A stretch of DNA of 64,000 bases from Macrostomum lignano (GCA_002269645.1 NIVC01001631.1:89886-153885); one strand, 5' to 3'; counted from the stretch's first letter, positions 23,558-64,000 are shown. Numbers and translations are program-made. Notes: a model not told the origin generated them from the letters alone.

Positions 23558-26500
23558 ATGCGAAAATCCCTGATGTGGGCAATCTCAATAGCCTTTACAC
23601 TCTTGGCCTGCTGGCCGAGGAATTCCGACTTGCAGGCCATTGGAGGTACGTAACGAATGCCTGATATGTACTGTTTCAATACTCTGTTAGAGCAGGCTAA
23701 TGCCATTGTTATATCCCATTGCAGGCTGCCCCAGCGGCTCTGTGCAGTACTTCGATCGATGCCTGGAGCTGCGCCTGAACCCTGCAACATGGCAGATTGC
23801 CAGCCAGCAGTGCCGTCTGTACCAGCCCACGTCGCGACAAGACCTGTCAGTGCTGGACCAGTTCCAGTGGGCCGGCTACAACCTTTGGACCGGTGTGCAC
23901 TTTAACGCCAGTCTGGGACGAGTAGCCTACCTACATGACGGTGCCGAGGTGCCAGCGCACCTGTTCCACCTGGCTTACAGGCCAACCAGCAGCGGCTGCG
24001 TGTCTTTGCAAGTTGCCGTCGGGCGTCTGGCCGTTGCCAACTGCACCGCTTCGCTGCCGTACCTGTGCGAGCAGCCGGCCATTGCCGATGGTGGGTAATG
24101 GTCTCTGCCAGTCCTCTGGGCTGTCAGTTCAAAGTTTTGAAGATGGACAGTTGCCAGATGGATAATTGCCAGATGGATAGTTGCCAGATGGATAGTTGCC
24201 AGATGGATAATTGCCAGATGGATAGTTGCCAGATGGATAATTGCCAGATGGACAGTTGCCAGATGGATAATTGCCAGATGGACAATTGCCAGATGAATAG
24301 TTGCCAGATGGATAGTTGCCAGATGGATAATTGCCAGATGGATAGTTGCCAGATGGATAATTGCCAGATGGACAGTTGCCAGATGGATAATTGCCAGATG
24401 GACAATTGCCAGATGAATAGTTGCCAGATGGATAGTTGCCAGATGGATAATTGCCAGGCGAATAGTTGCCAGATGGATAATTGCCAGATGGATAATTGCC
24501 AGATGGATAATTGCCAGATGGATAATTGCCAGATGGATAGTTGCCAGATGGATAGTTGCCAGATGGATAGTTGCCAGATGGATAGTTGCCAGATGGATAA
24601 TTGCCAGATTGCATAATTGCCAGATGGATAGTTGCCAGATGGATAGTTGCCAGATGGATAGTTGCCAGATGGATAGTTGCCAGATGGATAGTTGCCAGAT
24701 GGATAATTGCCAGATGGATTATTGCCAGATTGCATAATTGCCAGATGGATTATTGCCAGATTGCATAATTGCCAGATGGATAGTTGCCAGATGGATAGTT
24801 GCCAGATGGATAGTTGCCAGATTGCATAATTGCCAGATGGATAGTTGCCAGATGGATAGTTGCCAGATGGATAGTTGCCAGATGGATAGTTGCCAGATGG
24901 ATAATTGCCAGATGGATAGTTGCCAGATGGATAATTGCCAGATGGATAATTGCCAGATGGATAGTTGCCAGATGGATAGTTGCCAGATGGATAGTTGCCA
25001 GATGGATAATTGCCAGATGGATAGTTGCCAGATGGATAGTTGCCAGATGGATAGTTGCCAGATGGATAGTTGCCAGATGGATAGTTGCCAGATGGATAGT
25101 TGCCAGATGGATAATTGCCAGATTGCATAGTTGCCAGATGGACAATTGCCAACAGGAACGGTGACGAACCTTCTATTTCAATTTGAAATCAGCTTACCCG
25201 CATCATCTCACAGGAGCCTGCCAGCCGGGCTTCCTGCCAACTTGGACCAAACTGCGACTGCCTAACGGCCTGGACACAATCGGTTCGAGTCCTTTTGCCG
25301 ACTTTGCGAGCCCAACTGAACAGTTTGGCGCGATGCAGAGAAACTACTCAAAAGCGTTTGGATTCGTATTCTGCGGAGTGAGTGATCGGGGTTGCTATGC
25401 ACATCTTCGAGGGCTGTTTTAAAAAGTAGTGTTGCTTTTCATTATACACTCATATCTCACGTTCTGATGATCGAAATAACATCAATTCGCACACATTTAT
25501 AGCGGCAACTCTCTTCTCCATATTCAGGCGCGTCGCCACCGGGGGGACAGGGGACAGGGGGGACCAGGGGGGAGAGGGGACAGGGGGGGACAGGGAGGGG
25601 GGACAGGGGGACAGGGGGGGACAGGGGGGATAGGGGGGACAGGGGGACAGGGGGGACAGGGAGGGACAGGGGGGACATGTCCCCTCCAGTAAAAACTATG
25701 GGGGAGACATGCCAATGCTTTGTCCCCCCAACCCACCTTGTGACTCGTTGTGGTAATCAATAATTTTTCTTCAAGGCGCCAAAATATAGCGCATTTGGTG
25801 CTAAAATGAGTACCTGCGGCGCTAAAATGAGTACCTGCGGCGCTAAAATGAGTACCTGCGGCGCTAAAATGAGTACCTGCGGCGCTAAAATGAGTACCTG
25901 CGGCGCTAAAATGAGTACCTGCGGCGCTAAAATGAGTACCTGCGGCGCTAAAATGAGTACCTGCGGCGCTAAAATGAGTGCCTGCGGCGCTAAAACGAGC
26001 CCTGACAACACGATTCTCAGAATAATGGAAATGTAGGAATTTAGTCATGTACATGTTGAATTCTTGGCTTTGCCACCCCCACACCATAAAATCCATGGCG
26101 ACGCCTTTGTCCATATTAATTAAACTTTAACATCATTAAAAACAAGCAATGGAAACAAAAGTTATGAACAAAAATATAGCACGAACTCGACCATATAAGA
26201 CTTACAGTAAGTCAACAACAAGATAGCTATGACAAAGCTATGATATAGCTATGACAAAGAAATATCTATGGAAAAACTTGAAGAATCATAGAACTTTTAA
26301 AGCAGCAGAATATTTCCCCTCTGAGCTTCAGGTTCATTGCTTTTTGTTCCCTCTTTTCGCTACGCCAAAAATCATGGATTGCATTTAAGTGTTGCTCAGA
26401 GGAGACTGATTTACACCCTTGGAGAACAGGGCACAGTGTAGCCGAGATTCATGACTTTCATCGGCTTTGGAAGTTTTTTTACACATCTTTTTGTTAAAAA

Positions 26501-64000: not shown

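Follow-up and report, generated by a model that had tools for sequence, protein, structure and literature searches.

A predicted giant secreted protein of Macrostomum lignano built from three tandem copies of a multi-domain super-module

We analysed a 64,000-nucleotide stretch of the Macrostomum lignano genome (GCA_002269645.1, NIVC01001631.1:89886-153885; hereafter the window), in which a large lectin-like gene lies on the + strand from position 23558 to the window end at 64000. This region is probably the 5' part of a single very large gene with 56 exons or more and no fewer than 3,648 codons, whose product would be a secreted scaffold made of three super-modules. The gene model comprises 56 exons in this interval and yields 3,648 amino acids (aa) before it runs off the window end, in agreement with the size of at least 3,645 aa given in a first-pass annotation of the same DNA. 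The giant protein proposed there is thus borne out by the model, with the qualification that the present copy carries an in-frame TAG, which is considered below.

The predicted protein begins with a single signal peptide, encoded by exon 1, followed by three diverged, colinear tandem repeats of a super-module of ~1,200 aa, as had been proposed. Module 1 (M1) occupies 23725-39213 (residues 31-1268), module 2 (M2) 40540-54668 (residues 1269-2485) and module 3 (M3) 54669-64000 and beyond (residues 2486-3648 and beyond). The module order is CTLD (for C-type lectin-like domain), a Cys-rich spacer, a degenerate kringle, a beta-sandwich (sandwich A), a region termed X, a first F5/8C (discoidin) domain, a domain termed B, a second discoidin domain and a short terminal domain read as sandwich-like. 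The modules are 23-25% identical to each other. Comparison by blastp gave E-values of 2.5e-25 for M1-M2 (896 columns), 1.8e-38 for M2-M3 (810 columns) and 7e-15 for M1-M3, and the global alignments had z-scores of 10.7-23 against shuffled controls. The triplication is far beyond chance.

The exon structure follows the same pattern. Corresponding exons of different modules have equal or similar lengths (228/228, 243/240/237, 142/142, 134/134, 88/88/91, 359/368, 154/151 and 206/197 nt), and intron phases are also common to the modules. The two exact-length pairs singled out by the first-pass annotation, of 228 nt (46158-46385 and 57647-57874) and 134 nt (50550-50683 and 62761-62894), were reproduced with canonical AG...GT borders in the same phase. 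The motifs that it had named as shared were found where it had placed them: ESAF at 30726 and 46639 and EEAF at 58038; YLLVDLK at 30516, WLLLDLK at 46328 and YLLIDLK at 57817; and the ARYL/ARYV/ARFA...EVY motif at 36779 (TARYL), 50770 (PARYV) and 62981 (IARFA). The copies are not identical in layout: the CTLD is encoded by one exon in M1 and by two each in M2 and M3, the first discoidin domain consists of two exons in every module with differing split points, and the linker exon is fused with the start of the CTLD in M3. The super-modules probably originated in an ancient in-frame tandem duplication of a block of ~18 exons with phase-1 intron borders.

The model was built with our own exon-chaining program, which draws on generic weight matrices for splice sites, on a codon model trained with segments of obvious coding character and on phase compatibility, with tandem repeats masked. 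The resulting chain was then curated by hand by comparing the three modules mutually and with a paralogous protein, A0A1I8G7N1 (P0001). The organisation of the window is eukaryotic, its short exons alternating with introns filled by minisatellites. All 55 introns end in AG; 53 have a GT donor (mostly GTGAGT or GTAAGT) and two a GC donor (CAG|GCAAG). The two GC-AG introns, at 33468-33469 in module 1 (CAG|GCAAGC) and at 48114-48115 in module 2 (CAG|GCAAGA), both lie close to the boundary of region X and the first discoidin domain. Phase-1 introns accounted for 37 of the 55, as counted in an earlier build of the model. Independent support comes from P0001, which is colinear with model residues 24-1911 at 35-37% identity. 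The junctions between exons 18, 19 and 20 are exactly those of A0A1I8HIH9 (P0010), with 98% identity over 165 aa, and the junction 53027|54540 (..TWL|FETS..) corresponds to ..IWM|FETR.. in the paralogue. When Pfam was run on unspliced open segments, only two weak Lectin_C matches were obtained; since the domains are divided among short exons, the spliced model was needed for Pfam.

During curation, we dropped from the initial chain an 'exon' at 28956-29647 made of minisatellite sequence, along with very small filler exons at 35914-35931, 36450-36475 and 41023-41042. The exon at 33608-33654 was replaced by 33403-33467 with its GC donor, that at 47035-47144 by 46972-47144 (the long form of exon 29 matches P0001), and the pair 47780-48070/48547-48744 by 47780-48113/48500-48744.

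Two groups of relatives were found in the databases. A0A1I8HHG8 (P0006) and A0A1I8HIH9 (P0010) are fragments of this very gene, or of an allele or duplicate almost identical to it, and lack the triplicated architecture. P0010, automatically named 'Beta-mannosidase', is 98% identical over exons 18-20 and spliced as modelled, while P0006 covers module 1 up to exon 16, is a chimera with an upstream long interspersed nuclear element (LINE) reverse transcriptase (18353-20456) and reads into an intron at its end. The second group belongs to a paralogue gene, represented by the uncharacterised fragments A0A1I8G7N1/A0A1I8J9X6 (P0001/P0004), A0A1I8J0E9 (P0018) and A0A1I8GUP4/A0A1I8G7X9 (P0013/P0023). 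The paralogue shares the signal peptide, which in P0001 likewise stands immediately ahead of the CTLD, the domain order and three modules that correspond one-to-one to those of the window, at 34-42% identity (~35% overall). It differs in being a separate, much diverged locus, and neither the second half-exon of the kringle nor exon 4 is present in its module 1 model. The first module of P0001 matches M1 best, its second module and P0018 (42%) match M2, and P0013 matches the M2 tail to M3 (34% against 28% elsewhere). Because the modules of the paralogue match those of the window one-to-one, the triplication is older than the gene duplication. That all three modules were kept open in both lineages down to ~35% identity is the best available argument, at the level of sequence comparison, for a functional multi-module product.

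The three-module profile retrieved P0001 at E 1.7e-277. HMMER, run exhaustively against 1.84 billion representative proteins, gave only 16 matches at E<=0.001; those with a name are all uncharacterised UniProt entries of M. lignano. The family appears to be restricted to Macrostomum. A first homologue search with three M2 exons returned nothing, the word-indexed search used being one that misses relatives of ~40% identity. Literature searches with the UniProt accessions, and with Macrostomum plus kringle, discoidin or C-type lectin, turned up no account of the protein. The statement of the first-pass annotation that no named protein has this architecture is therefore upheld, the databases yielding just uncharacterised M. 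lignano fragments cited in no paper found. Three further M. lignano entries, P0016, P0017 and P0025, titled 'Kringle', 'CUB' and 'F5/8 type C' domain-containing in UniProt, reach only 25-28% identity to any of the window modules, and could be either modules beyond the downstream end of the window or other members of the family. P0007, P0008 and P0020, from JGI metagenome contigs of ~1 kb, are single-exon-sized fragments with 30-42% identity to window exons and 49-56% to the paralogue, which suggests DNA of related macrostomid flatworms in those environmental samples.

We then considered the identity of each domain. The domain order proposed for each module was essentially recovered with Pfam, profiles against the PDB and AlphaFold2 (AF2) models compared by Foldseek, except that the Methyltransf_FA-like assignment found no support and that the kringle present in each module is degenerate. 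The CTLDs scored 20.8 (M1), 30.0 (M2) and 21.1 bits (M3) against Lectin_C (PF00059), so that only M2 among the window modules passes the cut-off of 22.6 bits; the M1 CTLD of the paralogue reaches 23.3 bits. The Cys framework (C1-C4, C2-C3) is retained in M1- and M2-type CTLDs, and two canonical Cys are missing from the M3-type, in the window and in the paralogue. EPN or QPD together with WND form Ca2+ site 2 of the C-type lectins that bind carbohydrate in a Ca2+-dependent manner. In the CTLD alignment the EPN/QPD positions read RPT, QPS or QPG and the WND positions LAV, LVE or LTA, with no WND.

The kringle-like segment of each module has six Cys and a shortened C2-C3 loop. It gave no Pfam match, while its family profile matches the PDB kringles of HGF, angiostatin/plasminogen, apo(a), prothrombin, ROR1/2 and uPA (best E 1.7e-6), some over the whole kringle, and the family member P0016 carries the UniProt title 'Kringle domain-containing'. 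The AF2 model of the 'PLL' exon and the kringle-like part had a predicted local distance difference test (pLDDT) score below 50; for this same part, we entertain the idea that the kringle-like segment might be an insertion in a discoidin-like domain. The only kringle that passes the Pfam cut-off (PF00051, 34.3 bits) is encoded by exon 52 and spans profile positions 8-79 of 79. Exon 52 is a phase 1-1 exon lying inside the intron that divides domain B of M3, with no equivalent at the corresponding position in M1 or M2. It is a candidate for a domain-in-domain insertion by exon shuffling, or for a cassette exon.

Domain A is formed by the YLLVDLK and ESAF exons together. AF2 folds it as a beta-sandwich with pLDDT 80-94, and Foldseek matches it to the CBM32/F5-8C domain of chitobiase, F-lectins, SUN, muskelin and the N-terminal domain of galactose oxidase (E 2e-5 to 1e-4); the predicted structure would place it among the galactose-binding-domain-like folds. 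The two F5/8C domains of each module are, as judged by profile comparison, genuine discoidins: the discoidin 1 profile matches FV, the factor VIII C domains, neuropilin-2 and discoidin-2 in the PDB (E 1.4e-7) and the discoidin 2 profile matches lactadherin and the FVIII C domains (E 3.2e-12), with retinoschisin also among the proteins matched. Single-sequence Pfam scores against PF00754 are 13-27 bits for a cut-off of 28.2. The discoidin domains of factor V/VIII, lactadherin (MFG-E8), neuropilin b1/b2 and retinoschisin are thus alike to those of the window (E 3e-12 and 1.4e-7 for its two), but these proteins have one or two discoidins with A domains, EGF or CUB, and none repeats a CTLD/kringle/F-lectin/discoidin block.

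Domain B is F-type-lectin-like over its full length in profile alignments. Its profile matches the FBP32 fucolectin at E 8.7e-9 (profile 27-157, chain residues 21-146), lectinolysin at 7e-6 and the Streptococcus pneumoniae fucolectin-related protein SpX-1 at 3e-5. Compared with the F-type lectins (striped bass FBP32, eel agglutinin, lectinolysin, SpX-1), domain B is alike throughout and domain A only in general fold. In the HMMER alignment of domain B to FBP32, however, the His of SCTHT and the NRGDCCPER stretch stand opposite non-conserved residues (f/r; vldadk), and neither the fucose-binding His/Arg/Arg triad nor the RGDCCxER stretch is conserved. Since the His, the two Arg and RGDCC(G/P)ER are not retained, canonical fucose binding by domain B is not expected. 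The earlier description as a multi-lectin, glycan-binding protein therefore holds by fold and not at the level of the sites, the CTLDs being devoid of EPN/QPD and WND and domain B of its triad. The protein would be lectin by fold, not by site; glycan binding is possible, with no prediction from canonical mechanisms, and because both the canonical Ca2+/sugar site and the fucose triad are missing, the ligands need not be glycans.

Region X comprises ~180 residues that are conserved in the family, in modules and paralogues. No Pfam match at E<=1 was found for the three window copies or for the M1 and M2 copies of the paralogue, nor any PDB profile match; the sole match in the protein database is another M. 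lignano fragment, and its AF2 model has a pLDDT of 42.6. The region had been described as Methyltransf_FA-like (PF12248). This assignment is not supported, given the absent Pfam and PDB matches and the hhalign comparison, which gave a probability of 0.1 between the X profile and P0002, a protein that bears PF12248. The 'short F5/8C' exon and the linker exon together form one conserved unit of ~115 aa, the short terminal domain, which found no match in the PDB profile search. The coordinates of all exons are given in Table 1.

Table 1 Exons and domains of the gene model, in window positions
Feature	Position	Strand	Evidence and remarks
Exon 1: ATG and signal peptide	23558-23645 (88 nt)	+	16-residue hydrophobic core; donor GAG|gtacgt score 4.5; phase-1 intron follows
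M1 CTLD, exon 2 (366 nt)	23725-24090	+	Pfam Lectin_C 20.8 bits, E 7e-4; tblastn of P0001
M1 Cys-rich spacer and 'PLL' exon, exons 3-5	25214-25377, 28502-28619, 28739-28870	+	P0001 aligns to exons 3 and 5 (55% identity for exon 5); exon 4 uncertain
M1 degenerate kringle-like, exons 6-7, six Cys	29683-29799, 29901-29969	+	profile vs PDB kringles best E 1.7e-6; exon 6 55% identical to P0001
M1 sandwich A, exons 8-9	30337-30579 (YLLVDLK), 30667-30909 (ESAF)	+	AF2 pLDDT 80-94; Foldseek E 2e-5 to 1e-4
M1 region X, exons 10-11	32339-32538, 32796-33147	+	homology among modules and paralogues; AF2 pLDDT 42.6
M1 discoidin 1, exons 12-13	33403-33467 (GC donor), 34224-34524	+	P0001 'AGFWQP..DWHQ' 48-50% identity; profile E 1.4e-7
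M1 domain B, exons 14-16	34917-35162, 35557-35711, 36779-36866 (TARYL...EVEVY)	+	profile vs FBP32 E 8.7e-9
M1 discoidin 2, exons 17-18	37971-38329, 38481-38634	+	Pfam F5_F8_type_C 27.2 bits, E 5e-6; profile E 3e-12
M1 short terminal domain, exons 19-20	38724-38929, 39078-39213	+	conserved across modules and paralogues; P0010 joins exons 18-20, 98% identity
M2 CTLD, exons 21-22	40540-40711, 41122-41330	+	Lectin_C 30 bits (stop read as W); 50-52% identical to P0001 either side of stop
M2 spacer and 'PLL' exon, exons 23-24	41654-41926, 44502-44612	+	both align to P0001
M2 kringle-like, exons 25-26	44723-44863, 44947-45027	+	57% identical to P0001; profile vs PDB kringles
M2 sandwich A, exons 27-28	46158-46385 (WLLLDLK), 46580-46819 (ESAF)	+	weak Pfam F5_F8_type_C_2, E 0.09
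M2 region X, exons 29-30	46972-47144, 47780-48113 (GC donor CAG|GCAAGA)	+	exon 30 end from paralogue alignment and phase
M2 discoidin 1, exons 31-32	48500-48744, 48926-49067	+	Pfam F5_F8_type_C E 0.09; family profile
M2 domain B, exons 33-35	49460-49696, 50550-50683, 50770-50857 (PARYV...EIEVY)	+	F5_F8_type_C 21.9 bits, profile positions 4-125/127; profile matches F-lectins
M2 discoidin 2, exons 36-37	52104-52471, 52578-52728	+	42% identical to paralogue fragment P0018; family profile
M2 short terminal domain, exon 38 and first 129 nt of exon 39	52831-53027, 54540-54668	+	junction WL|FETS vs paralogue WM|FETR
Exon 39: M2 end and M3 CTLD start	54540-54841	+	continuous open frame; acceptor score 2.8, donor 3.0
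M3 CTLD second exon, exon 40	55132-55352	+	Lectin_C 21.1 bits
M3 spacer and 'PLL' exon, exons 41-42	55523-55801, 56402-56524	+	P0001 residues 205-259 align at 56365-56529
M3 kringle-like, exons 43-44	57110-57247, 57333-57407	+	splice sites; profile vs PDB kringles
M3 sandwich A, exons 45-46	57647-57874 (YLLIDLK), 57979-58215 (EEAF)	+	
M3 region X, exons 47-48	58566-58732, 58863-59282	+	intermodule homology; donor score 8.4
M3 discoidin 1, exons 49-50	59514-59672, 59745-59886	+	F5_F8_type_C 22.4 bits, E 1.4e-4; family profile
M3 domain B, exons 51, 53 and 54	60416-60655, 62761-62894, 62981-63071 (IARFA...EFEVY)	+	family profile vs F-lectins
Extra kringle, exon 52	61172-61465	+	Pfam Kringle 35.1 bits, E 1.7e-8; acceptor score 5.8, donor 3.1
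M3 discoidin 2, exons 55-56, cut by window end	63247-63432, 63819-64000	+	aligned with M1/M2 discoidin 2

Several points weigh against a single gene encoding one giant secreted scaffold. Given the TAG, the full-length product may not be made from the present copy. The exon chain is a prediction assisted by homology, and the protein databases searched hold no gene model that spans window modules 2-3. The paralogue lacks an equivalent of exon 4 (28502-28619), which is required for the frame and is also used in the UniProt model P0006. Inclusion of the kringle exon 52 in the mRNA is a candidate only. Most Pfam scores are under the gathering thresholds, and region X, which is unclassifiable and beta-rich, and the short terminal domain have no classifiable fold. 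The C-terminus lies beyond the window, where a membrane anchor is possible, and the function is assigned entirely by analogy.

The region could alternatively hold three tandem genes, each encoding a protein of ~1,200 aa. Tandemly duplicated lectin genes are common, all database models of the family are fragments, and the stop in M2 would matter less in such an arrangement. Nevertheless, we regard it as highly improbable. A start codon with a signal peptide occurs in exon 1 only, with none in M2 or M3 and no second signal peptide in the model. The last exon of M1 ends in a phase-1 donor (score 8.4) that fits the phase-1 acceptor of the M2 CTLD exon, and exon 39, the first 43 residues of which are homologous to exon 20 of M1, is shared by the terminal domain of M2 and the M3 CTLD. 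The paralogue models also run continuously over the boundaries, P0001 from M1 to M2 and P0013/P0023 from M2 to M3. Because exon 39 spans the M2/M3 boundary and the paralogue models cross both, we conclude in favour of a single transcription unit over three genes, as the first-pass annotation had assumed. The TAG at 40608-40610 (TGG to TAG, model residue 1291) lies in exon 21 of the M2 CTLD and is the only stop within the 3,648 codons and the sole disabling feature. The present copy might be a pseudogene or null allele, in which the TAG cuts the product short after module 1 (~1,290 aa) or leads to decay of the mRNA, and the full protein would come from another allele, a near-identical duplicate or the paralogue; we give this a real but minority chance. 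It is favoured by the position of the stop, which replaces a conserved Trp (W in M1, M3 and M2 of the paralogue, Q and R in the other two aligned rows) in an exon that joins its neighbours in phase at its natural borders, 40540 and 40711, and by the missing gene model over modules 2-3. The database fragments P0006 and P0010 are ~2% different from the window, so there is another copy or allele; a large-scale duplication took place recently in M. lignano, and this would tolerate a null copy. Against a pseudogene, nothing else among the 3,648 codons and 110 splice sites is disabled, modules 2 and 3 match the paralogue (34-42%) no less closely than module 1 does (35%), and a sequencing error is possible. 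Since the flanks of the TAG are ~50% identical to the paralogue on both sides and M2 and M3 are as conserved as M1, the stop is either recent or an error.

Also against a null allele is an in-phase alternative 5' splice site, CCCATG|gtcagt (40598-40603, +), whose last exon base, 40597, lies 11 nt upstream of the stop. It scores 2.3 compared to ~0 for the regular donor (40711), and both leave two trailing bases in the same phase. Joined to 41122, the alternative donor would bypass the TAG at the cost of 38 aa of the CTLD. A small intron removing the TAG by joining 40597 to the acceptor at 40684 was discarded, as it breaks the frame; the only in-frame route is from 40597 to 41122. The present copy would then either yield only a truncated product of ~1,290 aa or escape the stop through this donor.

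As regards the function of the single giant product, the N-terminus is signal-peptide-like and no transmembrane-like segment is found in the 3,648 aa (19-residue windows, outside known sandwich strands). The model protein has 50 N-glycosylation sequons and 84 Cys, with 2.3% Lys, 5.7% Arg and 6.3% Gly. The signal peptide, the absence of a membrane helix, the sequons and the Cys content all fit a secreted extracellular protein. Such a product would act as a long multivalent binding scaffold in a matrix, a surface coat or a gland secretion (mucus, egg, adhesive), in which the sandwich and kringle units would each add weak contacts. By analogy with proteins of similar make-up, we would rank a secreted multivalent scaffold first among the roles considered (adhesive, mucus or coat, egg, recognition, receptor). 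More specifically, and as a tentative proposal, the protein could be the founding member of a Macrostomum-restricted family of giant scaffolds, a structural component, distinct from the ap1/ap2 glue, of an as yet uncharacterised flatworm secretion (surface coat, egg or glandular material); in its lectin-type domains the canonical sugar sites would have been lost, and a kringle would have been shuffled into the middle of an F-type-lectin domain. Under the same proposal, the nine-domain super-modules would comprise a CTLD, a kringle, galactose-binding-like sandwiches (four to five) and an unknown fold.

A role in the temporary-adhesion system, or in another glandular glue or mucus comparable to the large adhesive proteins of flatworms and sea stars, appears quite unlikely. 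The species does make very large glue proteins, and kringle proteins have been implicated in the adhesion of another flatworm (Tmed-krg1, PMC9229212). Mlig-ap1 (5,407 aa) and Mlig-ap2 (14,794 aa) are, like the window protein, very large secreted multi-domain proteins of the same animal, and Mlig-ap1 also has a C-type lectin domain (PMC9229212, PMC8621496). However, their architecture differs: Mlig-ap1 has a CTL-vWD-C8-TIL-EGF core flanked by Gly/Arg/Lys repeats, and Mlig-ap2 has TIL/vWD/C8/LDL/TSP-1 ends around 21 and 25 long repeats (PMC8621496). None of these domains or repeats is present in the window protein; vWD-C8-TIL, EGF and TSP-1/LDL were absent from Pfam scans of all nine module thirds, the composition is not Gly/Arg/Lys-rich, and no similarity to Mlig-ap1 or Mlig-ap2 was detected in the homologue searches. 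To judge by sequence comparison, the window protein is neither of these known glue proteins. Moreover, two proteins were reported to be sufficient for adhesion (PMC9229212), and a link of this gene to the adhesive glands would be drawn by analogy. The protein could instead be the extracellular part of a membrane-anchored pattern-recognition or cell-adhesion receptor with its transmembrane region downstream of the window, which we consider unlikely. The window does end within module 3, ectodomains with discoidin and CTLD are common in receptors, and the nearest non-Macrostomum matches, P0002 and P0003, are titled 'macrophage mannose receptor-like'. These matches nevertheless extend over just 10-16% of the query, a stretch roughly as long as a single C-type lectin domain, and the 3,648 aa contain no transmembrane segment. 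The mannose receptor family resembles the window protein in having multiple CTLDs in a large extracellular chain, but it combines ricin-B, FnII, eight tandem CTLDs and a transmembrane tail, whereas the CTLDs of the window are non-canonical and ~1,200 aa apart.

For a gene known in the databases only as misnamed fragments ('Beta-mannosidase', 'Omp85 domain-containing', a retrotransposon chimera), the analysis provides the full architecture and an exon map that is close to complete. The finding is a lineage-restricted new arrangement of well-known extracellular domains and not a new kind of system. The gene illustrates cleanly how a protein can grow when a whole block of several domains and exons, flanked by phase-1 introns, is duplicated in tandem and in frame, and it adds a candidate case of a kringle placed within another domain by a phase 1-1 exon. 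The preservation of the arrangement in two ~35%-identical paralogues argues for function. M. lignano, a model animal in research on bioadhesion, regeneration and reproductive biology, is routinely studied by RNA interference and in situ hybridisation, so that the role of the protein is directly testable.

Elsewhere in the window, a protein kinase gene is found on the minus strand at 7730-10917. Its Pkinase exons span 7730-8242 and 8796-9179, and an Arg/Ser-rich open reading frame occupies 10207-10917; by eye the gene resembles a CLK/SRPK-type kinase, and it is unrelated to the lectin-like gene. A scan of the window with Rfam returned no RNA family. Retrotransposon remains lie upstream of the lectin-like gene, namely a reverse transcriptase (RVT_1, 18353-19675, within 18353-20456, +) and an RNase H (21036-21755, -). 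Two dispersed repeat pairs were observed. The direct pair, 51076-51326 and 63472-63694, is intronic at both places, before discoidin 2 in M2 and inside it in M3. The inverted pair joins the retrotransposon region (20847-21061) and the large M1 intron (27845-28062), and P0006 takes part of this intronic copy as an exon.

The introns contain minisatellites at 24141-25151 (15-mer x67), 30954-32314 ((ACAG)x340), 42052-44413 (20-mer x118), 45055-46046 (30-mer x33), 49708-50487 (44-mer x18) and 53206-54433 (11-mer x114). Several of them are stop-free in two or three frames of the + strand and give rise to long spurious open reading frames, one of which runs into exon 39. In addition, two 14-bp satellites are present, AATCCCTAAAGGGG x33 at 1-460 and GGAGGGGAAACGCC x31 at 22691-23121, the latter just upstream of exon 1.

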